NCBI GenBank assembly: GCA_964234715.1
Contig: OZ174292.1
Strand: one strand, 5' to 3'
Length of the DNA stretch: 64,000 nucleotides
Source: Podarcis melisellensis
Lineage: Eukaryota
In this document: piece by piece, positions 2,146 to 59,000 of the stretch
Position numbering within the stretch: position 1 is the first letter of the stretch
Layout of the letters: every line of letters begins with the position of its first letter
The notes under the pieces: generated by a model
The model's database searches: none
What the model was told of the DNA's origin: nothing
The model's input: only the letters and a program-made list of their open reading frames with translations
Translations under genes and position numbers: made by a program

Positions 2146-2782
2146 AATAGAATCACAGAATTGTGGAGTTGGAAAGGACTTAGATGGACATGTAGTCCAA
2201 CCCCCTGCAATGCAGAAAACTCAAGCATGGACACGCGTCCCAACCTCTCCTTAAAAGCCTCCAAGGTAGGAGAGCCCACCACCTCCCGAGAGAGTCTGTT
2301 CCCCTGTCTTACTGTCAGAAAGTTATTCCTGATGTTTAGTCAAAACTTCTTTTCTTGTAACTTGAAGCCATTGGTTCGAGTCTTACCCTCCGGAGCAGGA
2401 GATAACAAGCTTCATCTTCCATGGGACAGCCCCTAAGATATTTGAAGATGGCTGCCATATCTCCATTCAGTCTCCTCTTCTCCAGGCTAAACATACCCAG
2501 CTCCCTCAACCATTCCTCATAAGGCTTGATTTCCAGACTCCTGATCATCTTGGTCTCCTTCCTTGGCACACATTCTGGCTTGTCAATATCCTTTTTAAAC
2601 TGTGGTGCCCAGAACTGGACACCATATTTCAGGTGTGGTCTGACCAAGGTCGAATACAGTGGAACTCTGACTACCCTAGATTTCTGTTGATGCAGCCTAG
2701 AATAGCATTAGGGTTTTTTTGCTGCTGCATCACACTGCTGACTTGTGTTAAGCTTGTGATCTACTAAGACCCCTAGATCCCT
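2146..2782 (-). mobile_element. CR1 LINE 3' fragment
   Basis: ORF 2336-2647 (VRPHLKYGVQFWAPQFKKD...LRELGMFSLEKRRL.GD) is the typical CR1 ORF2 C-terminus; CR1-like (ATTCT) tail near 2146-2162. Confidence 0.9.
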
Positions 2783-6670: not shown

Positions 6671-7020
6671 AAGCTAAAGGGACCCCTGACCATTAGGTCC
6701 AGTCGTGGCCGACTCTGGGGTTGTGGCGCTCATCTCGCTATATTGGCCGAGGGAGCCGGCGTACAGCTTCCGGGTCATGTGGCCAGCATGACTAAGCCGC
6801 TTCTGGCAAACCAGAGCAGCGCACGGAAACGCCGTTTACCTTCCCACCAGAGTGGTACCTATTTATTTACTTGCACTTTGAGGTGCTTTCGAACTGCTAG
6901 GTTGGCAGGAGCTGGGACCAATCAATGGGAGCTCACCCAGTCAAGGGGATTCGAATCGCCGACCTTCTGATCGGCAAGCCCTGGGCTCTGTGGTTTAACC
7001 CACAGCACCACCCGCATCCC
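6671..7020 (-). mobile_element. Sauria SINE, full length, inserted in an old L2-like fragment
   Basis: Same structure as 5387-5744; TSD AAGGCTCTTGTATA (6657-6670, 7022-7035). Confidence 0.93.
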
Positions 7021-7635
7021 TAAGGCTCTTGTATACAGATCCCCAAACAACTTGGATCCAAGATAACTTGGGGACCCCCATAGCCCTTATACCCCAGCTC
7101 CATCAGTGAGATCACCAGCTGTTCCCCATGCTACAAAGGCCTCAGACAGAAGTTGGGCACGTAGTGCCAGCACACGCCTGCTGTGGAACACTCAGTTGAG
7201 AAACAACAGGCACCCTTACCTTTGATATTCAGGTGCCTCTTTGAAGACTTTTGTATGTATAGGCCTACGTTGCTGCTTAATTTTTTATTAGCTAGTCATT
7301 TAATGATTTTTTTAAAAAGGTGCTTTACTGCATATATTGTTTACCCCACCATGTTATATTGTATGAATTGGCGCTGTATGAATGCTTCTGTAAATAAAAG
7401 AAACAAAGGGATTCGATCGGCTGGGACAGTAAAGGTGCCTGGCAGCTGGTTCCCAGGAGTCATTCACAGAATGTGTCCTTTGTCTCAGTGGACAGGATGC
7501 ACTCCCTCTCCATAACAGGTGCTGCTGAGCAGCCACCAAGGATCACCAAGTCCCCTGTCCCCAACCCCTGCGCCCTGTGCTACAACCAGGTGTACTTGGA
7601 CCCCACCCCTTCTGTGTTTCACCTCCCCTGCTACC

Positions 7636-7823
7636 CCAGCTGCCCTCCCCTGTTGCGCCTTGGTACACTCCAGCATTAACATTCCAGCTGTACCATCTTA
7701 CACCTACTGGCAGGGGTGTGCGGTGAGGGGCTCCCTCACCAGCTGCCCTTCCCCGTTGCGCCTTGGTACACTCCAGCATTAACATTCCAGCTCCACCATC
7801 TTACACCTACAGGCAGGGGTGTG
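7636..7823. repeat. Local tandem duplication, ~103-bp period
   Basis: CCAGCTGCCCT...GTTGCGCCTTGGTACACTCCAGCATTAACATTCCAGCT...CCATCTTACACCTAC.GGCAGGGGTGTG present twice. Confidence 0.85.
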
Positions 7824-8137
7824 TGGAGAGGGGCCTCTTGGGCTCAGCCCTGGCATGACTCAGAGTGGGTGGGATCCCCAGCGCCACTCCTCTCCTCTAA
7901 TCCCTTAATTGCTCACGAAGCCTGGACTTGCTGGCAGAGTGCATGATGGGGTGGCTGCGTTGGGGAGAGTGGGAAGGTTCACTCTGTGCCCTGCCTGGGC
8001 AGATGGCTTCAGGTGTTCACAACACGAGGGAGAATGCTGCAGTGGGGTTCGGGGAGGGGAGGGGAGGCCATCCACCCTACTGAAGGCAGTAAGAATAAAG
8101 AGCAGGACACCACACTTATAATCCAGTAAGTGTGGAT

Positions 8138-8587
8138 TATATTTCAACCTGTGTGCCGTGGCACCCTGGGGTACCTTGAATGATGATCAGAGGTGCCGTG
8201 GGCAACACTGGCCTCTGTCCCTCTTTCTTTCCTTCCCTCCCACCCCTGATTTTGTCTGGCATCTCTGCCTCCCAAAGGCTTGCACAGCTGTTCATTGCAG
8301 CAGCCCTGACTATCTGCAGGCGAATGGTGCCTCTGGGAAGCATCCCTCTTTGGGGTGGGGGAAGTTCAGAGACCAGGGATGGCAGCGGCAGCTTCCCGGA
8401 GGACTCCCAGAGAGAGGAGAGGAGACTGAAGGAACCCTCCACAAGGGAGGGTGTTCGAAAAAGGGTGAGAGGCTGCCAGCTATGCAGGCAAGGGGTGACA
8501 GAACTGGGCTCCTGAGCCCCACAGGTGTGCCGCAGAAAGAATGGTTGGTCAAGGGAGCTGTGGACTCAAAAAGGTTGAAAATCTCTG
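8138..8587. mobile_element. Non-autonomous hAT-like element (inverted homolog of 18789-19373)
   Basis: Extended reverse-complement similarity to 18789-19373; hAT-like terminus GGTTGAAAATCTCTG. Confidence 0.7.
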
Positions 8588-8985
8588 CTTCCGTTCTATT
8601 CAACAGGCGGAAATCCAAGCAAGGAGCCGACAACCGTTTAACAGCAACTGTTTATTTACATGTGGGGTGATGCAAGGCCAGCCCCCAAAGATGGTTCAGA
8701 TGCTCTCACAGAGTGATGCGGAGGAACAGTGAAGTTGTATGAGCTCTGGTGGGGAAGGTGAGAAGATTTTGGCTGGGCACTCCTGGCATCCAGCAGAGGC
8801 AGCTGTTTTCCTGGGAGGGGGGGCCTGCCAGTCTCAGTGTCCTCCGTGGCACACGTGCAGCTCAGGCTGTGCCCCTTCCCAGTGTTGTTGGAGGTGATGA
8901 CAATCCAGCTGTGACCATTGCCTGCGTCCTCGGAGGTGTGGGGTTCCCCAGCCAGCAGCTGAATCTTTGCAAGGTCTGGGCAAGA

Positions 8986-9059
8986 CTCCTGTTCCTGCTG
9001 AACTGAGCCAGTTTATCTAAAGCAACTGAGTATCAGCTCAGTAGGCACGGGAGGCAGAG
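8986..9059 (-). ncRNA. MIR24-2: pre-miR-24-2 hairpin (3p mature 8989-9010; 5p arm 9025-9048)
   Basis: Reverse complement of 8989-9010 is TGGCTCAGTTCAGCAGGAACAG, identical to miR-24-3p. 5p arm GTGCCTACTGAGCTGATACTCAGT; 5' flank CTCTGCCTCCCG as in mir-24-2; clustered with miR-23a/27a. Confidence 0.97.
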
Positions 9060-9338
9060 CCCCATGGAGGAAGCTGGGGTCTCCACGCCTCTCCTCTGCC
9101 TGCCCCCACCCCACCAACCCTCTCCAGCTCTATCTCAACCCCCACCCACCCTGCATTTTCTGTCCCCTATCAGGGTCTTCCATGGTGCCATTAAGGCAGG
9201 ATTTGGGGGCAGATGTCCAGGGCCCCACTGAGAAAGAGCGGGGGGGGGGGGCAGGGGAGAGACAGGACCAAACACAGGAGGGACTGCTTCTCACATACTC
9301 AATTGCTCAGGACAAATAAGGAGGGCTGGGGGTCTCTA

Positions 9339-9575
9339 CAGTGGTACCTCGCAAGACGAAATTAATTCGTTCTGCGAGTTTTTTCGTCTTGGGAAGCACG
9401 GATTCCCTGGGTATTAACGGTTTTAAGAAAAAGGAAACAAACAAGCAAGACGTTTTCGTCTTGCGAAGCAAGCCCATAGGGAAATTCGTCTTGCGAAGCA
9501 ACTCAAAAAACGAAAAACTCTTTCGTCTTGTGATTTTTTCGTCTTACAAGGCATTTGTCTTGCGAGGTACCACTG
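9339..9575. mobile_element. Tc1/mariner MITE, family B, inside the pri-miRNA spacer
   Basis: TIR CAGTGGTACCTCGCAAGAC/GTCTTGCGAGGTACCACTG; TA TSD; second copy at 40050-40304. Confidence 0.9.
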
Positions 9576-9639
9576 TAATCTTATTGGGCCTGGGGGACAT
9601 GTTTGGAAATCTTAAGGAAACGTAGGCACCAGCCAAACA

Positions 9640-9891
9640 CAGTGGTACCTTGGTTCTTGAATTTAATCCTTTACGGGAGTCCGTTCGATTCCCAAAATGG
9701 TTCGAAAACCAAGGCACGGCTTCTGATTGGCTGCAGGAGCTTCCTACACTCATTCAGAAGCCAGGGAAGCCCCGTCAGACATTCAGCTTCCAAAAAAACG
9801 TTTGCAAACCGGAACACTCACTTCCGGGTTTGTGACGTCTGGGAGCCGATTTGTTCGACAACTAAGCCATTTGACTACCAAGATACCACTG
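9640..9891. mobile_element. Tc1/mariner MITE, family C, inside the pri-miRNA spacer
   Basis: TIR CAGTGGTACCTTGGT/ACCAAGATACCACTG followed by TA. Confidence 0.85.
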
Positions 9892-10354
9892 TATCCATTT
9901 AACAGAAGGAAGACTCGTGAAGTCCAGGGCCATCACCCTGATCCAAATTGGTGGAATGCCTACCCCCCCCCCGAAAAAACAAAGCAAATCAAAGCAAACC
10001 CACAAACAGGCTACCACCACAAGCCAACCCCTCCCAAAAATGTCTATTAGACATTGGGAAGGTCAGGCTCCAAGTGGGTTAAGTAAGTCCAGTAAGTCTA
10101 GAATCACCTGCTCAAGCAGGTGCAGACCATAGTACATTCCTACCCCCCAATTAAGAATTCTGAGATCTGTAGTTTACCTCTCAGAGAGCTACTATTTCTA
10201 GCACCCTCAACAAACTACAGTTCCCTGGATTCTTGGGAGTGTTTTAAAGGTAGAGTACGCAGGCTGGCTGGCTGGCTCCCCTGGCATCCCTTCTTGGCGA
10301 GGTTTTGCCGAGAGATAAAGTTGTGGCATGCGCCTGCATGTGGGGACAATGGAC

Positions 10355-10435
10355 TCCAAGTGGCGGAACTTAGCCACTGTGAACATGATGGAACCAAACA
10401 CTGTTCACAGGTGGGCTAAGCCCTACCCTTTGCAG
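10355..10435 (-). ncRNA. MIR27A: pre-miR-27a hairpin (3p mature 10363-10383; 5p arm 10402-10424)
   Basis: Reverse complement of 10363-10383 is TTCACAGTGGCTAAGTTCCGC, i.e. miR-27a-3p (CCGC end; 27b has CTGC). 5p arm AGGGCTTAGCCCACCTGTGAACA pairs with it. Confidence 0.97.
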
Positions 10436-10658
10436 TCAGGAGGTCTTTCCTGGCGAACCCCATGCCCCTCGCTGAAGCCCCCAACCCCCACTCGCACATG
10501 AGTGCATGCTCCGCCCCCCCCACTCCTCAGGTACAGCAGCCACGCATGAGGTTGGTGGTGCATTTGCCATGCTTTGGGCAGATTTCTCACCTTCCCACAA
10601 CCGCTGGTGAGCCTCTGCTGCCTCCCATCCAAGTCGGGTGTGATCTCTCTCGCTCACC

Positions 10659-10732
10659 GACGGTTGGAAATCCCTGGCAATGTGATTCGGAGCGTCAAGA
10701 TAAAATCACATCACCAGGAACCCCAACTGGCA
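10659..10732 (-). ncRNA. MIR23A: pre-miR-23a hairpin (3p mature 10666-10686; 5p arm 10703-10724)
   Basis: Reverse complement of 10666-10686 is ATCACATTGCCAGGGATTTCC, i.e. miR-23a-3p (TTTCC; 23b has TTACC). 5p arm GGGGTTCCTGGTGATGTGATTT; 3' flank AACCG. Confidence 0.97.
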
Positions 10733-11244
10733 GCGGCAGCAGCGGCAGGAGAGGGGAGGCATCGGGGAGAGACCTTTGGGCATGAGCTGGAAGAGAAAAG
10801 AGAGGCATGAATCAGGTGGAAGCAGGTCACAAGGTGAGAGAGCTTTTGACTTCTTGAAAACCTCACCCCCTGCATCCAGCTGCGAGCCGGCTGTAGGAAG
10901 AGGGGAGTAGAAGCAGTAGGACACACAGCAGGATAGGCCCCCACCCCACTGTTTCTCATAAAAAATGGGCAAGCGAAGGAGAGGCCATGTCACAGCTCCC
11001 TGGTGAGGTGGTCTCTACAACACAAGATGTTTGATATGCCTGACATGTCATATTTTTTTTACATGTATGCTTAAAAATACCTCTAAGTGCATACTTGAAA
11101 CACATCATGTGGTGAGAAGTGGACTGCTGGGGACCAAAGGGCACACACGTCAAACGAAATGTACCATTGCATTTAAGGTGGGTGGGCATCAGGATGGGGA
11201 TTGTGGTGGGCATGAGTGGGCGGGGGGGTTGACACTTTCCTCCC

Positions 11245-11730
11245 CTGCTACGCAGAGGGCCTTCTCGGTAGTGGCACCCGCCCTGTGGAATACCCTCCCA
11301 CCAGATGTCAAAGAGAAAAACAACTAAAGTGGTACCTCTGGATATGAACGGGATCCGTTCCGGAGCCCCATTCCTATCCAGAAGTAAACGCAACCCGTGA
11401 CTGCATGTCTGCATGTGCGCGGGTTGCGATTTGCCACTTCTGTGCATGCGCGTGATGTCATTTTGACCGTCTGCGCATGCGCAAGCAGCGAAACCCGGAA
11501 GTAACGTGTTCTGTTACTTCCGGGTTGCCGTGGAGTGCAGCCCGAAAGCGCTCAACCTGAAGCACATTTAACCCGAGGTATGACTGTACCAGACTTTTAG
11601 AAGACATCTGAAGGCAGCCCTGTTTAGGGAAGCTTTTAATGTTGAACAGACTATTGTATTTTAATATTTTGTTGGAAGCCACCCAGCCAGATGGGCGGGG
11701 TATAATAATAATAATAATAATAATAATAAT
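11245..11730 (+). mobile_element. L2-type LINE 3' end, split by a MITE
   Basis: RAFSVVAPALWNTLPPDVKE motif, tail CTGAAGGCAGCCCTGTTTAGGGAAG...GGGCGGGGTAT(AAT)n; interrupted at a TA. Confidence 0.85.
11327..11586. mobile_element. Tc1/mariner MITE, family D, nested in L2
   Basis: AGTGGTACCTC...GAGGTATGACTG with TA duplication; related copies at 33010, 59001 and 63084. Confidence 0.88.
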
Positions 11731-13014
11731 TATGCTCCTAACAAAAATGCCCCCTGCACTGGAAGGGAAGCTCCTGTGGGGGCAAAAAAACAACAACAAG
11801 CAAGCAAACAGCTTTGAGGGAGCAGTTTTAGCCAGGAACACCACACATGACCCTGATGCCAACCCCTCTCCCAATCCATTTCAAATGCAACAACACATCT
11901 AAAGTAGCATGACCTTTGGGCCTCATTCTCAAAAAGCAGGGCCATCGGGCAGCAAAGTTCTCTGTGCCTCAGAGCCAAGGGGAGGGTCCACAAACTGGTT
12001 GCAAGGGAAGAGAACCCAGCCTAAACTGGGGCCAATACTGGTGCCCTCCTAGCAGTGCTAACCCCACTTTGCCAGAGCCAGCCTTTTCCTTTTGCTTCCA
12101 CCCAGCCAAAACTGAACCCCTTATCCCCAAGGGTGTTAGAGCTTGTTCTCACATGCATACTTAGCATGTGATGACTGCAGCACTGTCTCTCGACCTGCAT
12201 GTGGGAATGAGCTATCGCAGGTAACAAGCACCGCTGACAGTTTTTCATATACCTCGATGCCGGCTCAAAAGTAAGACATTTCTATGGAGGCCGCCCACCC
12301 ATTCAGCAAAGAGTCATCTGAATGTTGAGATATACGAGAGGTGAAGTGAGTTTGCATGAGTGTGACCCAGCCAGGAGAGAAGAGTTGGAACACTGAAAGA
12401 CATGTTCATTTTTCCACACAGGTCCCACTTTACGAACACAATGCGCTCCCTGGAAATAGTTCGACAGGCAAGCGTTTGCATAAAGAGCCAACAATTCCCA
12501 TTGATTCTTATGCAAAATTTTCCAGTGCGTTACTGACCGTGGAATTTTGACTCCCCAAGGCTAGAATAAAACCCAGGGAAACTGCTCTCTGGTTTGTCCA
12601 TTTGTTCCCTCTCCCTCCCTCAGCCAACCAGCAAAAGGCAAACAAGGAAGTAAAAAATGCTTTCTGTTTGGATATCTGAATTTATGGTCCATACTGTGAG
12701 GTCTGGGTACTAATTCTTCGTGTTCAGATAAGTGAATTTTCACACTGTGAACCCTTGCAAAGTGGGAGCTGCGTGTCTACATGGCTCAATTCTCATTGCT
12801 GAGACTCAGTCGCCTCATGGCCTGAGGCCTGCTCCATGTACCAGGACCTTGTTTGTGGCACTTAAAAGCAAGCCTGAGGCAGGACAGCAGGTCCATAACA
12901 TCTTCACCTGTAACGTTGAGGGCTTATGCTTTCACCAAGTTCCCTCCTCTGCCAGTTTCTATGTCTTTGGAGTAGGAATGAGGATGAGCTGAAGAAGGAC
13001 TGACAGTATTGGCC

Positions 13015-13363
13015 TATAATAACAATAATTTATTATTTATACCCCGCCCATCTGGCTGGATTTCCCCAGCCACTCTGGGCGGCTTCCAACAAAATATTAA
13101 AATACAATAGTGTGTCAAATATTACAAGCTTCCCTAAACAGGGCTGCCTTCAGATGTCTTCTAAAAGTCTGGTAGTTGTTTTTCTCTTTGACATCTGGTG
13201 GGAGGGCGTTCCACAGGGCGGGTGCCACTACCGAGAAGGCCCTCTGCCTGGTTCCCTGTAGCTTGGCTTCTCACAGTGAGGGAACCTCCAGAAGGCCCTC
13301 AGTGCTGGACCTCAGTGTCCGGGCTGAATGATGGGGGTGGAGACGCTCCTTCAGATATACTGG
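13015..13363 (-). mobile_element. L2-type LINE 3' end
   Basis: Reverse complement of the 17985-18370 family, with (TTA)n tail. Confidence 0.85.
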
Positions 13364-13744
13364 TCTACCTTAGAGGACTATTTTAATTCAACATTTCTCT
13401 AATCTTTTGATATTTAGGGCAGATGGGATTGTCCCTGGGGTAAAATTGGAGGGACACTTCAGACTTGTACTTAGAAGGATATAGACCAGCTTTCTGTCAC
13501 ATGGTGCCCTACAGATATTTTCATAGTTCCCACAATCCCTGACTATTGAGCATGCTGGCTTGGCGAGAAAGGACAGAGCGGCAGCAAAGTGCCTCCTCCG
13601 CCTCAGAGCCAACCTTGTTTCTTAACATTTGTGTTCAGGACTGCAGGCAAAGGGAGACCAAGAGTGTGTCCATACCATACATTCAAAGCACATTTTCCCT
13701 CTCCAATGAATTCTGGGAAGTGTAGTTCACCCCTCACAGAGCTA

Positions 13745-13888
13745 CATCTGAAGGCAGCCCTGTTCAGGGAAGTTTTTAATATTTAATGCTGTACTGTTTT
13801 TAGCATTTGATTGGGAGCCGCCCAGAGTGGCTGGGGAAACTCAGCCAGATGGGTGGGGTATAAATAATAAATTATTATTATTATTATT
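13745..13888 (+). mobile_element. L2 3' tail inserted in a short palindromic repeat (~13665-13958)
   Basis: CATCTGAAGGCAGCCCTG...AAATAATAAA(TTA)n between halves of a CTGGGAAGTGTAG...CTACAGTTC repeat also seen at ~10130-10258. Confidence 0.75.
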
Positions 13889-14256
13889 ACAATTCCCAGC
13901 AACCTACAGTTCTCTTGGGTTTTTGGTGCAGGTGGTGCTTTAATTGCAAGGTGTGTACGTGCAGCTGAAGAAGGGGAATGAGACTCACCAGAGGTAGAGA
14001 GAGGCCCAGGAGATTTGGGGTCTGCGATGCCTCGAGGGGGGCAGTCCTGTCGCCAGAGTGTCTCTGCAGAAAAACAAAGAAGGTGAGAGAGTGATTAGTC
14101 TCCTGCTCCGACCTTTGCTTCTGAGATTGCAGATTGAAACATCCTTGCTGGGCTGGGGAAGAGAATTGGGGAGGTGGGCCTGCCCACTCCCCCGACCTAC
14201 TGAGACCGCGAGGCCAAGGGAAAGCGGTGCAGCTCCCAAATCAGTTGAAAGCAGCC

Positions 14257-14266
14257 CTAAAAATAG
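14257..14266. promoter_or_regulatory. Consensus MEF2 site in the candidate host-gene intron
   Basis: CTAAAAATAG exact; AP-1 TGAGTCA nearby at 14654-14660. Confidence 0.4.
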
Positions 14267-14967
14267 AGCATTCAAAGCACCAAGATTATGTGGCAGCTCC
14301 GGAAACTCACTTCCCAGCTGGGTGGGGCCCACAGGGTACAGCACATTTACCAGCCGGAATATTCCCTCCAGGCCTGCCTGCCGCCGCCGCTAATTCGTTT
14401 TGTACAAATTGTTCCACTGCAGCCTCAAGCCAGGCCTGGCACACCTGGGGCACAAGGCTGCGGTCTGGCTCCGCCACCACCAGCTGGTTGGGCAAAGCTC
14501 CTGAGTGGGGCAGTGCCGGTACTGGAGTTGCTTTGGGCACAAGGCAGAAGACAGGGCACCCCTAAATGCTAAAGTGCTCTGCCTTGAGAGGAGCAAATGT
14601 TCAGAATGGGGGGTGCCCTAGGCCAGCGGGAGGAGGGGGACATTTGTTTGCATTGAGTCAAAGCGAACCAGCAGCCATCTGGGCTAAAGAGACAAGGCAG
14701 GGAGTTCAGAAAACATTGCCAAACCCCAACCGCACAGAAATTACACAACCTTATTTCCCATCCTACCCCTGCCCACGCAGCCCTTACTCCTCAGGTGCTG
14801 CTAGCCAGGCACACCAGAATGAACATGGAACGTACAGCCAGAACTGACCCAGGGAGTTTAGTCCCCTGAAATGAGACAGAGCAGCGCTAGATAACTGCCT
14901 GGTGCAGTCTGCCACTGCCTGAACTTGCTTATCCTATTTCACTGGCAAGAATCCTATTGGTTTAATC

Positions 14968-15108
14968 CAGCCTCGCCCGCCCAATGTGGTGCCCTCCACA
15001 TGCTTTGGACTACAAGTCCCATCAGCCCCAGCCGGCATGGCCAGAGGATATGGATGATAGGAGCTTTGGTACAAAAACATCTGTAGGGTACCAGGTTAGC
15101 GAAGGCTA
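14968..15108. mobile_element. Short palindromic hAT MITE
   Basis: GGACTACAAGTCCCATCAGCCCC core; degenerate 8-bp TSD GTTTAATC/GTTTAGCC. Confidence 0.65.
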
Positions 15109-15220
15109 GTTTAGCCTATTGAAAACATGCACCTTTTGTTCCCACAGGTTTTACTTTTGAAAATACTCTGCACTTCTTTCAGTTAGTTATCTGTGATAAA
15201 ACTCAGAGATAGGCATATGG

Positions 15221-15327
15221 CAGGGGTCAGCAAACTTTTTCAGCAGGGGGCCGATCCACTGTCCCTCAGACCTTGGGGGGCAGACTATATTGGGGGGGGG
15301 GGGATGAATGAATTCCTATGCCCCACA
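15221..15327. mobile_element. hAT MITE family E, left part only
   Basis: CAGGGGTCAGCAAACTTTTT start shared with 16138, 27431 and 48575. Confidence 0.75.
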
Positions 15328-15328
15328 G

Positions 15329-15899
15329 CATATTCACAGGCCAGAACTGAACTGAACTGAACTGAAGGGTTCAGTCAGCCTGCTTATATAGAGCTCCAGT
15401 ACAACGTAACTGTAACAATTTTCTAAAACTATCCAATCACTGAGGGACGCAGGTGGCGCTGTGGGTTAAAGCCTCAGCGCCTAGGACTTGCCGATCGAAA
15501 GGTCGGCGGTTCGAATCCCTGCGGCTGGGTGCGCTCCCGCTGCTCGGTCCCAGCGCCTGCCAACCTAGCAGTTCGAAAGCACCTCCGGGTGCAAGTAGAT
15601 AAATAGGGACCGCTTACCAGCGGGAAGGTAAACGGCGTTTCCGTGTGCGGCTCTGGCTCGCCAGAGCAGCGATGTCACGCTGGCCACGTGACCCGGAAGT
15701 GTCTCCGGACAGCGCTGGCCCCTGGCCTCTTAAGTGAGATGGGCGCACAACCCCAGAGTCTGTCAAGACTGGCCCATACGGGCAGGGGTACCTTTACCTT
15801 TTACTATCCAATCACTGAACGTCACTTTCGATCCCTTATTTGCATAACTATCTACAGTATCCCCCTGCTGGCCCAGGGTGAGAACTTCAGTACATAACA
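15329..15899 (-). mobile_element. LTR-like remnant (U3/R) interrupted by a Sauria SINE
   Basis: Minus strand begins TGTTATGTA (TG terminus), then CCAGCAGGGGG, ATGCAAAT, ATTGG, TATATAAG (15383-15390) and (GTTCA)n; truncated at the adjacent MITE. Confidence 0.6.
15444..15802 (+). mobile_element. Young Sauria SINE, full length
   Basis: 16-bp TSD ACTATCCAATCACTGA (15428-15443, 15803-15818); almost identical to 42236-42598. Confidence 0.95.
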
Positions 15900-16137
15900 G
15901 CCTTGGCCTGTGCATCTAGGCAATGCTGCTCCCAGCTGACGATGCCTCATTCTGGGCAGCTGAGATGGTTGGAAGTGTTGGGTTGCAGGACTCCCGCAAA
16001 TCTTAAAGCCAACCTTGACTTCTGGAGCTGTCAGCACTGCATTTGCACAACAGTCTCTCAATGTGAGCGAAGGATCTGCTCCTGGAGCTGAAGCAGCAGT
16101 GGAAACCACAGGAGGCCTTAGGCTGGAACCCTTAACA

Positions 16138-16447
16138 CAGGGGTTAGCAAACTTTTTCAGGAGGGCCGGTCCACTGTCCCTCAGACCAGGTGGGGGGCTG
16201 GATTTTTTTTGGGGGGGGAATGAACGAATTCCTCTGCCCCACAAATAACGCAGAGATGCATTTTAAATAAAAGCACGTATTCTACTCATGTAAAAACACC
16301 AGGCAGGCCCCACAAATAACCCAGAGATGCATTTTAAATAAAAGGACACATTATATTCATGTAAAAACACGCTGATTCCCGAACCATCCACGGGCCGGAT
16401 TTAGAAGGCGATTGGGCCGGATCCGGCCCCCGGGCCTTAGTTTGCCT
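16138..16447. mobile_element. hAT MITE family E
   Basis: Internal duplicated CACAAATAACCCAGAGATGCATTTTAAATAAAAG unit; homologous to 27431-27753. Confidence 0.85.
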
Positions 16448-17984
16448 TAATACCACAGGGGACAAACTTGCCTTGTCTCACTGTACAGTAGAGACGTCAT
16501 ATAAAGGGAAAGATTATTCTTGGTTTAGACACAATTGCCTTTTATTAGGCCTCTGGGATGGTTCTGAGGAGAGGAGAGGCTGCCCATAAATAATTCAACT
16601 TTTTCCAGAAGTTTGCAGCTACTCTGGAGGCTGAAAGCTCACATTGCAGAGTGTATCTCTTCCAGCAGTGCAAAAGTGTGGGGCAGACTGGAAGATTATC
16701 ACTCTATCGAAGCAGAACCATTTTTTCTCAAAGCAATTGCCAAAAGAAGAAACGGGGTCCCAAAGGGGGGGGGAGGGAGGGGGAAAACATCACGAAACCA
16801 GCCCCCCCAAATGAATCTGTGCTTGTTCTTATTCGGAAGGCTTATTCACAACCTTTTCACAAATGAAAAAAGCAACGATCTTCTGTATGTGTAGAAACCC
16901 CTCCTCCCATATTCAGGATGATTCCCTTGAGTAGCCTCACTGCCCCCCCTTTACATATGGCTCTTAAATTTTCTTCCTGCTGTACAACAGAATTCATTTA
17001 CTCCAACAGCCCCCCCAACAGAGAGTGCTTGTAAAAGATACACTGTTACCACATAACCATCTTATAATTATTTTGCATGATTGTGTGCTGTTTTTTTGCT
17101 TTTTGTCTGCTTTGATAACTTTTTGAAGAAGGACTACAAATTCTGTACATAAGGAAGAAGTACGTCGAACGCAACATTGAATGTGACCTTTGCCAGCTGC
17201 AACCATCTGAGAGCCAAACTAGACAAAAACGGCTTGTAAAAGGTCTTGAGCGTCCAGCTGGGATCAGGATCTCAGCAGGGGGCAATGTTTTGAAGCCCCT
17301 CAACCACCACGATCCCTATTTGTTTCAGTGGCCTGATATTTCAGTTTTAAAAGGTCATTTGTGCAGTTACTAACTCCTCCTCTCCTATGGTCCGCAGAAG
17401 GCTGGTTCCTCATACACAGGAACATTTTTTTTACCTGCTTGCGTATTGCGGACATGATACACCCTGCATGTTGCTACCAGAGAACTTGGCAAGGAAGTAG
17501 AAATCGGAAGAACAGCAACCTAAAAATCAGACCGGATTTTTAAAGGCAGCCACCAAATTTTTCCAAAAGTTCAAACAGAGATAGTGGTTTGCCCAGAACA
17601 GGTACCACCCACCTCCTTGCAAAATCAGGACTGCTTCTGGCAAATAGGGATCACATTAAAAGTGAAGGCTCACATAATGAAATGCTCCCCCCCCAATAAA
17701 CAAACAAAACCCTGTGCTTGGACAACTAACCTTTCAGAAGGAAAGCTAGCTTCACCACGCCAGGTGTTCAGTCTTAAGAGGTTGGGGAGTGGGTAGGTGA
17801 CCAGTTGAGATTGGCCTCTTAAGCTGCTCTTACTCCTGGTTTTTTTTTGGGGGGGGGAAGCTGGGGTGTTAATTTGCTTTTAGGTCCCCCTGCTCTTTTA
17901 AAGTAGGGCGATCTGATCACAGACCTCCCATGCCACATCTGTTTTTTGGGCCTCGGTCAGCTGGAACATTGTGGGCTTCCTAAC

Positions 17985-34689: not shown

Positions 34690-34878
34690 ATGTCAAGGAA
34701 ATAAACAACTATCTGACTTTTAGAAGACATCTGAAGGCAGCCCTGTTTAGGGAAGTTTTTTTAATGTTTGAAGTTTTATTCTGTTTTTAATGTTCTGTTG
34801 AAAGCCGCCCAGAGTGGCTGGGGAAACCCAGCCAAATGGGCGGGGTAGAAATAATAAATTATTATTATTATTATTATT
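34690..34878 (+). mobile_element. L2 3' tail
   Basis: Matches the 18170-18370 tail; (TTA)n end. Confidence 0.85.
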
Positions 34879-35039
34879 AACTGAATTTACATCACACCTT
34901 TCCTCCCAAAGGAGACCAGGACAGTAGGGTTTGCTGGGTAAGGAGGCCAATGTTGAGGCTCTAGCTAGTGTTCCATCTCCCCAGCCTCTACAGTCTGGCA
35001 ATCCTATCTCGCTCCAACTACAGCTACGGTTTACGTTGA

Positions 35040-35572
35040 CTTCTTCTTCGGCGATCATTCGTAGCTGAGTAAGACTGTCTTCCATAGACACGGTTTTAAC
35101 AATGAGTCCGTAAGTGACTGTGGAGACCAATTCTGGACCCACACGTCCTTCCACAGTGAGGACATTGGTTCCTGGGAAGGAGTTGATTCAGGTGCGGATT
35201 TGCTAAGCCTGTCTTCCTCCTAGCACGTTTCTCCCTTTCGTCCTGAGTTTGAGCATCTTCAAAGCCCATTACACTTTTGGTAAAGGCTGTTCTCCAACTG
35301 GAGCGCTCGCAGGCCAGTGTTTCCCAGTTGTGAGTGTTTAGACTACATTTTTTAAGATTTGCCTTGAGACAGTCTTTAAAGCTCTTTTGTTGACCACCAG
35401 CATTACGCTTTCCATTTTTAAGTTTGGAATAGAGGAGTTGCTTTGGAAGACGATCATCAGGCATCCGCACAACACAACCAGTCCAACGAAGTTGATGTTG
35501 AAGAACCATTGCTTCAACACTGGTGATCTTTGCTTTTTCCAGTACACTGATATTAGTTCGCCAGTCTTCCCA
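35040..35572 (-). mobile_element. RTE-clade LINE 3' fragment with open C-terminal ORF
   Basis: QLRWTGCVVRMPDDRLPKQLLY...GGQQKSFKDCLK...CPHCGRTCGSRIGLHSHLRTH, then a short 3' UTR and (GAA)n tail. Confidence 0.9.
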
Positions 35573-36780
35573 GACGATGGAATCTTTGAAGGGATATTCA
35601 GAGACTGTTCCTAGATATAGCAGCACAGGAAAGAAAAGGTCTCAGGAGAAAACGTGGGAGCCTGGAACTGAGACATGAGTGCCCCATGTGAAGGACTGAG
35701 AAACCTCTGCTGAGGGAGATTTAGGAGCAGCTTGCCAGCCCCTCTCCTCCTTGTGAGCAGGGCAGGCTGGTCGGAGGGGGGCTGCTTCAGCAGTCTCTCC
35801 CCCCCTTCCCCAAGGCAGCAGCACACACCCAATTCAGACTGGGCAGGATTCAAAGCAGTCTCTGCTTTTGGGACTTTCAGATCTTGCATGCTCTGCTCAG
35901 CGGTAATGGATCCAGCTGGCTTACAGCTTCCCACGCCTGCCCTGGGCTGTCTAGCACACAAAAGGCGTTTTGTATTATAGTTGTATATGGGAAAAAGGGG
36001 GTTATGGCATTATACTAAAAAGGGGCTGAGATCAAGGACGAGACGGAGCAGGGAATTAGGAGAGGAGGGGAGCTGTAAGTGGAAGAGAATGGCAGTTGTC
36101 TGCAGGACTGGAAACAAAGTTAAAGGCATAGAGGAAGTGAGCCGGTGAAATATAAATGTGGCTTGTCTACAGCTGGCCCAAGACATTTTGGTGCCTGCAG
36201 AAGAAAATTAAAACATCAGGCCCCTCCTCTAACTAATTAATACAAGGCACAACCAGTCAGGGAAGTCTCTTGTGAATGCCCCCCACCCCACTGAAACAAA
36301 CAAGAGCTGCAGCAGAGTGCGCTGTCAGTAGGGAGGGGCACATTTATACATTTCAGTTCCTCTCTGTTTCTCATTTTTCCAATCTTCTATTCAATTCTCC
36401 AAATGTCTGCCTCAGTTTGCAATCTTTTGTTAAAAAAAAACATCCTCACGAAAATTCATCAGTGCCAATTTCTCCTACTGTATTTTTCGCATACCACACA
36501 TTTTCGCAAAGCATTTCCCCATAATATAACACATTTTCGCATACTTTCTGTAATAAGTGCCTTTTCAGCCACACTTCCCCAAGAAGATGCATTTTTGTAC
36601 ATGTTATTTGGCGTGCAAACGGCAATGCAAAATTCAGAGAAGCAAGAATTTCCCAAGAGTTTTAGTTCTCCTATAGTTTCGGGAAACTGCAAATCCGGTG
36701 GATTCACCTTTAAATGTGAACTGAATTGAATTTACCCTCATCCCTGATTGTCACTCATATTAAGTAGCCCAGATTGTTAA

Positions 36781-37579: not shown

Positions 37580-37779
37580 NNNNNNNNNNNNNNNNNNNNN
37601 NNNNNNNNNNNNNNNNNNNNNNNNNNNNNNNNNNNNNNNNNNNNNNNNNNNNNNNNNNNNNNNNNNNNNNNNNNNNNNNNNNNNNNNNNNNNNNNNNNNN
37701 NNNNNNNNNNNNNNNNNNNNNNNNNNNNNNNNNNNNNNNNNNNNNNNNNNNNNNNNNNNNNNNNNNNNNNNNNNNNNNN
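37580..37779. other. Assembly gap (200 N)
   Basis: Run of N; the round length suggests a placeholder of unknown true size. Confidence 0.99.
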
Positions 37780-39699: not shown

Positions 39700-40434
39700 T
39701 TGCGGTTTTCAAAGGTGTGCCGCACCACACTGGTGTGGCAGGAGAGGGTGGCAAGTGTTGTGGGAAGATTCAAAGACATAGAAACATCTAAACATTTCAG
39801 TGTAGTATATTATAGTATAAATGGTTGTTGTTGTTTACAGATACCGTTTCAAAATGACAGCCAGAGCATCAAGTGATACTGAGGACAAGCCTAGTTGTGA
39901 TCCAGAATCACCATTCGAACAGTGTTGGAGAAGACTCATTTATAATTATATTTTGGGAATGATTCATGTTCTTATGTAGCTGTGTTGTTCTCCACTTTCT
40001 GGATGTCCCATGATCATATTACAAAGTAGTTGTGTTCTATGTTATAATACAGTGGTACCTCGCAAGACGAAATTAATTCGTTCTGCGAGTTTCTTCATCT
40101 TGTGAATTTTTCGTCTTGCGAAGCACGGATGCACCCTGGTATTAACGGTTTGAAGAAAAAGGAAACAAACTCACAAGACGTTTTTGTCTTGCGAAGCAAA
40201 CCCATAGGGAAATTCGTCTTGTGAAGCAACTCAAAAAACAAAAAAACTCTTTCGTCTTGCGAGTTTATCATCTTACGAGGCATTCGTCTTGCGAGGTACC
40301 ACTGTACAAGCACTGCTAAGAGTTGTTTCTTTTTGTTTTACAATCTTTTTCTTAATAATGATAATAAATCAGTGTGGTGCGAGCAAATTTTTATTCTGAA
40401 AGTGTGGCCCAGCGAAGAAGTTTGGGAACCACTG
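39700..40434. mobile_element. Old hAT (Charlie-like) element with nested MITE
   Basis: Right end AAGTTTGGGAACCACTG, degenerate left end, flanks GTTTAGTG/GCTTAGTG. Confidence 0.5.
40050..40304. mobile_element. Tc1/mariner MITE family B
   Basis: TIR CAGTGGTACCTCGCAAGACGAA with TA TSD. Confidence 0.9.
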
Positions 40435-56572: not shown

Positions 56573-59000
56573 GCTAGTTAATTCTCAAGCCAGACAATGT
56601 GCTATATTGTTATGCTTCTCACTATATAATTAGATACAAGGGGAGGGTGCAGTGTGGTGGTTCATGTAGGACAGCAAAAAGAACCACTAGCCTGGATAAC
56701 AACAAGAGTTCCAGCAAATGCAGCTTTTATCAGCCCTGTAGCTTGATGAGGCTACTCTTGCTGAAATTTCTCTTCCTTAAAAATCTCTACAGTACTAGAG
56801 GCCTGTTCTGGGATGTGCAGGCCATTGAAAGGCTTGGGATCTCAAACCGATAATTTTCAGCACCATCACCAAACTGCAGTTCTCAGGATTCTTTGAGGGA
56901 AGCCGGGGCAGTTAAACTGATGTACTGTATAAACAAAAACAGAATCAGAGTAAAAAAGGTGTTGGCGCACCTCTACGGTATGTTCAAACCCTACCCCAAA
57001 TCCTGTGTCTCTTCACCATGCCATTTCCCAACCTCCAGTTAAGACACGCCATTGAAAACAGCACAGAGGAACCCAAGTTCAGTGCCAAAAGTGCTGTGTT
57101 CCCACACCAAGGATAAAACTGTGGCCATCGCCTTTAGAATGAGTACCAAAGATTTCAAAATGCGCATGAAATGTCACTTGTTCTGTCCAGCCAGTAGGCA
57201 GAGGGGAATCACCTCTGATGCCTCTCTTTATACCGCTATCCACACCGTTGCTCCCAGTGGCCTCCTTGCATTTCCTTCAGTGGACGCTCTCTATTTATGG
57301 ACAGCATCTGGAAGGGCCTTGCGCAGGCTTGGGGCCAGCTGCAAAGAGCCAGAGTCTTCAGAGGCTGCCTTAAGCCCTGTCCCGTAGGTCCCTCCTTTGG
57401 TCTTTGAATCCAGCGTTGAGTCACATACTCGGTGCTGCCCAGCAGTCCCAGACCTCAGTCATAAATCCTTTTCACAGTAATTGCCTTCCCAAGAGTGTGT
57501 TCCTGTGAAGATCAAAGATTTATGGTGTGCGCATGCGAGAGAAAGAGGGCTAATTTCAGGCATGTATGGTGCGCTTCATGCGCCCACTTTGTCCTGTTCA
57601 AATGCACCCCTGTGTTCTAATTTTGCAACGGAAGTGAGTGTACTCGGGATCTTTTAACGGTTAATGCATAGTTTTTCCTGTATCAATTCCAAAGTCCATA
57701 TTGGGGCAATGCCATCATTAAGCCAACCAAAAGAGTTCTGGGGAAATCAAAAGCTTACACATTACTTTATGGCATTTTGGTTGGCCTAACAAAGGCCTTG
57801 CCCTAATATGGACCTTGGATTTTTTTCTTATGGGCCAGCAGAGCTACCTTTATTCTCTGTATTAAGTTATCCTGAGTACCAAACACTCTTTATTAAGAGC
57901 TATGCCCATTTGATCTAGCCGTTGCAGCATTTTTTGCAAGAATCTCGGAAACTAGCCGTTTCCAGTAGTTCACCAGAGGACCAGTGCCCTTTCAGCCGAT
58001 TCCTGCCCTGCTTCCTCTCTTCAGAAGCCACCTGCGTATCCCCAGAAGAGACACAACATCCTCCCTCCAGGGCCCCAGGCCTTTGCTTAGCTCACTCCAC
58101 CCTGCTACCAGCTTCTCCCCTTACTTTGGGTGTGGCCATTTCTGAATGGCAAAGATATTTGTGCCAACATGTACTTCTGTGGGGAAGCTGTTCTGGGTTC
58201 AGTTTCCCATCCCCATTGTTTCCCATCTTGGATGATGATGGCAGGAAGTTCAGAATTTAAAAATGAATAAAATAAATTCAATAAAACAATTCTTTGTTTT
58301 TCTGCAGGCGTCACCTTGTAGGCATGTGCCAATTCTAGAAATGGAAGCTACTAGTAATGGCTTCTGCTTGTCTAGAACAGCATTTATTTATTTATAAATT
58401 ATTATTACTATTATTATTATTATTATTATCACCATCATTGAATTTATATACTGCCCTGTACCTGGAGGTCGCAGGGCAGTTCACAGAACAAAATCAAATT
58501 ATAAAACTACAAAAATATATTGCCCTCAAATAGCACTGGGTACGGCACAGCTGGGAAGTGAAGTGTTGGTGGATGAGAGAGTGCGCTTATCACACAGACA
58601 GAGGTTGAGCTCGGTTCAGATTAAGCAGCTGTTTGGGACAGTTTCTCTCCATGGGACGCAGCAGCCCAGTCTGCACGGAACTCTAAGCCAAAACATGGCA
58701 TCAGGATTGGCGGAGGAGCAGAACAGCTGTGATCTTCACTCATGTAGTTGCTCATTCACAAGAAACCATGGTTTGGTTTAGCATGATGAGCAAACAAGTG
58801 AGGCGACAGACCCAAGCGGTGGGTTAAAGCTCCATTAAGGGCCAAGCTAGATGTGGCAGAAGCTGTCAGGTGTGTTTGTTTTGGTCCATGTTTAAGTAGC
58901 AAGAGGGGTGTCTCATTTTTAGGATACAATGTTTGTGGCTTTAAGAGAAACTAAGCACAACTTTGCGAATGTATTCAGAAACATTTGTCTCTTGAACATA

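Follow-up and report, generated by a model that had tools for sequence, protein, structure and literature searches.

The minus strand of the lizard DNA analysed here, a stretch of 64 kb hereafter called the window, carries a miR-23a/27a/24 unit with all three hairpins intact and in the usual order, and with a much enlarged spacer between mir-27 and mir-24 (Table 1). This type of cluster is ordinary, long known and deeply conserved, and it is found here in a part of the lizard genome where the ORF-based track is blank. The locus is probably orthologous to the miR-23a~27a~24-2 polycistron of vertebrates, with the insertions in its spacer as neutral passengers.

The whole window was scanned against all Rfam families with covariance models, and exactly three matches above the gathering thresholds were obtained, each on the minus strand and each covering the full model. 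They follow one another in the canonical order mir-23, then mir-27, then mir-24 over a span of 1747 nt, and the trio therefore lies within the 10 kb that is the usual distance criterion for a microRNA cluster (PMC4144971). When folded with 10-nt flanks the hairpin of mir-23 gave -42.8, that of mir-27 -42.2 and that of mir-24 -37.9 kcal/mol, with z values of -4.6, -4.4 and -3.1 respectively against dinucleotide shuffles. The initial annotation of this DNA had described three intact minus-strand hairpins in canonical order, and the Rfam matches have exactly the same outer coordinates, with stable folds in addition. A permissive Rfam rescan of positions 7000-16500 gave mirror matches on the plus strand at 42.9, 32.9 and 30.7 bits, all of them under gathering, indicating that the strand assignment of the three hairpins is secure, and apart from the hairpins and these mirror matches the rescan recovered no RNA family, in the spacers or elsewhere in that region. 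The mir-24 mirror is located at 8984-9053 (+), where the mir-24 model scores 42.9 bits, under gathering; human mir-24-1 has a microRNA, mir-3074, annotated on the strand antisense to it (PMC8185923).

Table 1. Positions of the hairpins, spacers, repeats and candidate transcript signals of the cluster in the 64-kb window
Feature	Position	Strand	Remarks
pre-miR-23 hairpin, a-type	10658-10732	-	RF00642, 67.6 bits (gathering 52), E 5e-13
pre-miR-27 hairpin, a-type	10356-10433	-	RF00644, 73.7 bits (gathering 48.5), E 9e-15
pre-miR-24 hairpin	8986-9055	-	RF00178, 87.5 bits (gathering 50), E 1e-19
23-to-27 spacer	10434-10657	-	224 nt, no recognisable repeat
27-to-24 spacer	9056-10355	-	1300 nt: 573 nt repeats and 727 nt single-copy
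MITE-A	9337-9577 (element proper 9339-9575)		~239 nt; TA target-site duplication on both sides
MITE-B	9640-9891		252 nt; terminal inverted repeats of 16 nt with 94% complementarity
Palindromic repeat fragment	10153-10234		82 nt; 23-nt arms, 83% complementary
Acceptor-like pyrimidine tract and CAG	10787-10800	-	54 nt upstream of pre-miR-23; predicted from sequence only
Donor-like AGGTAA	10174-10179	-	inside the palindromic fragment; consensus match only
ATTAAA in MITE-B	9662-9667	-	sense orientation; GU-rich run ~30 nt later; possible cryptic polyadenylation site
Acceptor-like pyrimidine tract and CAG	9228-9243	-	consensus match only
AATAAA, the first one past mir-24	8651-8656	-	~330 nt downstream of the hairpin; the primary transcript may end here

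Between the a and b clusters miR-23 and miR-27 each differ at a single nucleotide (PMC2940846), and it is on these two diagnostic nucleotides that orthology of the lizard locus to the a cluster depends. The mature strings of hsa-miR-23a and hsa-miR-27a, as printed in PMC3995942, are present without mismatch as the 3p arms at 10686-10666 (-) and 10383-10363 (-), and the b-form strings of miR-23 and miR-27 are absent here by exact string match. The diagnostic nucleotides are thus of the a type, U and not A in miR-23-3p, and C and not U in miR-27-3p. The string at 9010-8989 is what we take to be the canonical miR-24-3p, in agreement with the Rfam consensus. An a-type 23~27~24 polycistron was what the initial annotation had proposed; the 3p arms, which match hsa-miR-23a and hsa-miR-27a and not the b forms, bear this out, and we assign the locus to the a paralogue (23a~27a~24-2) with high confidence.

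The locus could instead be the b cluster or yet another paralogue of vertebrates, with a-type nucleotides present by chance, since a and b are told apart by no more than one nucleotide in each of the two mature arms. In its 5p arm the mir-24 hairpin appears nearer to human 24-1 than to 24-2, which would favour such a paralogue. The human a cluster is intergenic, with ZSWIM4, NANOS3 and mir-181c/d as neighbours. The 53 kb upstream of the lizard cluster showed neither a mir-181c/d hairpin nor an ORF of nanos type, which also speaks for another paralogue since human mir-181c is located 38 kb from mir-23a (PMC6315597); mir-181 is without an Rfam match anywhere in the 64-kb window, and these neighbours may be outside it. 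A window without coding exon fits the intergenic a cluster, and a long intron of AOPEP, the host of the human b cluster, equally so. With both diagnostic positions of the a type, however, we regard a b or other paralogue as quite unlikely, and in the following the locus is treated as the a cluster.

Among the 71 long ORFs of the 64-kb window no Pfam domain was detected, except for one weak zinc-finger hint. This is found in one of three abutting ORFs at 34747-35961 (-), as a C2H2 zinc-finger match below the Pfam cut-off (E 0.003), and these ORFs may derive from a transposon or from a zinc-finger gene that has decayed. By eye, the translation of an ORF downstream of the cluster, at 2336-2647 (-), resembles the C-terminal portion of the reverse transcriptase of a CR1/L2-type LINE, and it is probably a decayed LINE fragment. 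Positions 1-2000, likewise downstream, constitute the GC- and CpG-richest part of the window (GC 0.565, CpG observed/expected 0.55), with long ORFs that are of low complexity and lack a Pfam match. A run of 200 N at 37580-37779 is an assembly gap or a masked stretch.

The spacing within the cluster is where the lizard locus departs from the human one. The human a cluster, MIR23A~MIR27A~MIR24-2 on chr19p13.12, is like that of the lizard in its three Rfam families on a single strand, their order and the non-coding setting, and its miR-23a-3p and miR-27a-3p strings are identical to those of the lizard; in contrast, it spans 373 bp with gaps of 69 and 80 nt (from coordinates in PMC6315597), and the lizard cluster spans 1747 nt with gaps that are about three times (23-27) and 16 times (27-24) as long, the longer one containing two MITEs and a repeat fragment. 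Gaps of ~220 nt and ~1.3 kb, and a human cluster of about 0.4 kb, had been given in the initial annotation, and the measured 224 and 1300 nt and the 373 bp agree with these values. The human b cluster, MIR23B~MIR27B~MIR24-1, in an AOPEP intron on chr9q22, has the same order and gaps of 140 and 479 nt, again with the longer one between mir-27 and mir-24 (PMC8185923), while its miR-23b and miR-27b differ from the lizard microRNAs at the diagnostic nucleotides. The 27-to-24 link is therefore the longer gap in the lizard cluster and in both human clusters, indicating that a loose link at this place is normal for the family. Distances have been reported to be unequal between paralogues and enlarged in fishes (PMC4144971), so that variable spacing in the miR-23/27/24 family is already on record. 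Most simply, the enlarged spacer is a tolerated, probably neutral and lineage-specific expansion, located at whichever link of the cluster is the looser.

Three repeats are located in the 27-to-24 spacer. MITE-A has 24-nt terminal inverted repeats that are 96% complementary, and a second copy at 40048-40306 is 86% identical and has TA on both flanks. MITE-B is flanked by CA and TA, one side of the TA duplication being mutated. The two elements have only their termini in common (CAGTGGTA followed by C or T and after that by CT), and their terminal inverted repeats start CAGTGGTACC. This terminal motif occurs 13 times in the 64-kb window against 0.01 expected, which corresponds to about nine elements per 64 kb, and at that density the presence of two elements within 1.3 kb represents a slight excess, noted post hoc (Poisson P ~0.015). 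The TA duplication together with the terminal motif indicates the Tc1/mariner superfamily and points to both elements being MITEs of this type; presumably the termini resemble those of pogo/Tigger. In common with MITEs of the Tc1/mariner superfamily they do not code for protein, are short, occur in many copies and have terminal inverted repeats as well as TA flanks, and it is by termini and TA flanks that they are classed here, without a family name or an autonomous parent. In the palindromic fragment the arm 10200-10234 is the high-copy part, and partial relatives of the fragment are found at 13708-13745 and 56853-56893.

MITE-A, MITE-B and the palindromic fragment make up 573 nt, or 44%, of the 27-to-24 spacer, close to the earlier estimate that roughly half of it consists of recognisable insertions. 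The other 727 nt show no match elsewhere in the 64-kb window and are still about nine times as long as the 80-nt human spacer, so that transposons explain less than half of the expansion. The earlier description of the spacer as transposon-inflated therefore stands as far as the presence of transposons is concerned, but not as an account of most of the added length; the spacer would have reached 1.3 kb only partly by way of two Tc1/mariner-type MITEs and one repeat fragment.

Copy number and age of the insertions were approached with contigs from public sequencing runs, for which the query was the 27-to-24 spacer only (9056-10355), the hairpins being left out. Parts of the spacer were matched in 20 runs from 8 studies, none of the 20 being on record as RNA. 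The aligned contigs came from X1 (organism A, probably the source of the window), from X4 of organism B and X6 of organism C, and from X15, a run of organism H that was guessed to be RNA, with more than 10,000 contigs aligned per run, nearly all of them on repeats, and in X15 the matches are confined to the spacer repeats. Over 9320-9583 and 9628-9891 (the regions of MITE-A and MITE-B) the contig depth sums to 1e5-2e6, and over 10156-10243 (the region of the palindromic fragment) to 1e3-1e5, as against 8-50 over the unique parts of the spacer, indicating that all three repeats are very high-copy in organisms A, B and C. The 727-nt remainder of the spacer is single-copy. The bins adjoining the hairpins are empty even for X1, which may be an effect of filtering.

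Most of the aligned repeat copies are 90-95% similar to the copies in the window, indicating that the insertions are not young. One contig each of organism B (record 23) and organism C (record 30) runs from MITE-B through unique spacer into the palindromic fragment with ~98% identity, and the presence of the two repeats at the matching site in both organisms indicates that they were inserted before A, B and C split. MITE-B and the palindromic fragment are thus old and common to two related organisms. Junctions were traced for these two repeats only, as contigs break at repeats. An empty-site allele that skips exactly one MITE was absent among the joints listed, which is weak evidence. At 10079-10088, in a unique part of the spacer, the contigs of organisms B and C are about 45 letters longer than the window.

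The human cluster is transcribed by RNA polymerase II as a single primary transcript of ~2.2 kb, according to the work of Lee and colleagues as relayed in PMC11130849, and to PMC2940846. For the lizard we infer the same from analogy: one RNA polymerase II primary transcript on the minus strand would run through all three hairpins, probably entering at the acceptor-like site near 10787 and ending past the AATAAA at 8656, and there is no AATAAA on the minus strand between mir-23 and mir-24. The Microprocessor would then excise each hairpin separately as a canonical substrate, and Dicer should release miR-23a-3p, miR-27a-3p and miR-24-3p, with the spacer presumably having no effect. When 10790-8930 (-) was folded globally, with the span limited to 400 nt, all three microRNA hairpins are retained, and MITE-A, MITE-B and the palindrome are each self-closed, so that the insertions should leave the hairpins undisturbed and add less than their full length to the effective distance. 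A CNNC motif is found at +18/+20 past the 3p end of mir-27, and none within 30 nt downstream of mir-24; the lizard mir-24 otherwise matches the model over its full length and folds into a stable hairpin of normal length, and as a Microprocessor substrate it may be somewhat sub-optimal owing to the missing motif.

The initial annotation had gone further and suggested that the 1.3-kb, repeat-laden spacer partly uncouples the output of miR-24 from that of miR-23a and miR-27a. This could come about by a weaker Microprocessor neighbour effect, with less assistance or less competition, by polyadenylation at the ATTAAA of MITE-B, or by splicing within the spacer. The length of the spacer, 16 times that of the human one, is in its favour, as are the missing CNNC downstream of mir-24 and the fading of neighbour effects with distance: suboptimal hairpins profit most from cluster neighbours at 120-250 nt, still do so detectably at 900-1200 nt, and no longer do at 2000-3072 nt (review PMC13686912). 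A gap of 1.3 kb, however, is still in the range of partly retained neighbour effects by the same measurements (PMC13686912), and the repeats are predicted to fold as closed domains, which would shorten the effective distance. Cluster assistance as known from mir-144~451 and mir-15a~16-1, dependent on ERH/SAFB2, is similar in that the hairpins are co-transcribed and the distance to the neighbour can matter, but it acts on suboptimal recipients, unlike the human 23a/27a/24 hairpins, which are canonical and compete. Shang and colleagues found all three hairpins to be canonical in human 23a/27a/24 constructs, and the maturation of miR-24 to be best from the solo construct and poorer from two- and three-member constructs (PMC10576077), indicating that the neighbours compete rather than assist and that any effect of distance would be a relief from competition and not a loss of help.

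As for regulation of single members, miR-24-1 of the b paralogue reportedly has its own promoter and a splicing route (PMC13686912), and would in part be regulated on its own, which lends some support to uncoupling. In the compact mammalian cluster the members are already separately regulated post-transcriptionally via RNA-binding proteins (PMC11130849), so that the spacer is not needed to explain member-specific output. MITE-B and the palindromic fragment are moreover old and common to related organisms, as expected for tolerated neutral insertions. On balance published work does not favour an uncoupling of miR-24 by the spacer, and we consider it unlikely.

A more specific form of the same idea is that the MITEs have rewired the primary transcript, so that putative isoforms made by way of the ATTAAA or of the splice-like sites give miR-23a and miR-27a without miR-24. 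The ATTAAA in MITE-B is in sense orientation, followed by a GU-rich run, and no other hexamer of the two commonest polyadenylation-signal types lies between mir-27 and mir-24; it could end some transcripts ahead of mir-24. The predicted donor at 10179-10174 and the predicted acceptor at 9243-9228 are located on either side of the MITEs and bracket both of them, and if used they would remove ~0.94 kb. These signals are consensus matches, and we find isoforms of this kind very unlikely. If true, they would make the output of miR-24-2 separately adjustable in these lizards, and would constitute a natural experiment on the effects of distance and isoforms in a canonical microRNA polycistron.

At the extreme, the large distance and the two transposons in between might indicate that the cluster is broken, and that mir-24 is a stranded or decaying copy outside the working unit. 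Its hairpin is, on the contrary, the best-scoring of the three, with 87.5 bits over the full-length model, a perfect 3p arm and a stable fold; decay of mir-24 is rejected on this ground, and a broken cluster is scarcely credible. That the hairpin is intact although MITE-B and the fragment predate the split from two relatives argues for purifying selection. An a-type cluster that is still a working unit, with spacer insertions that are probably neutral passengers, remains the reading we prefer.

The added value of the locus is small: it is a natural spacing variant in which one gap is 16 times that of human and all hairpins are perfectly kept. A gap of this size next to intact hairpins indicates that large insertions are tolerated in the 27-to-24 link and that the hairpins can be retained without tight spacing. 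Measurements of distance effects have to date come from reporter constructs only, and if small-RNA data from these lizards gave a shifted ratio of miR-24 to miR-27a, the cluster would provide an evolutionary test of them.
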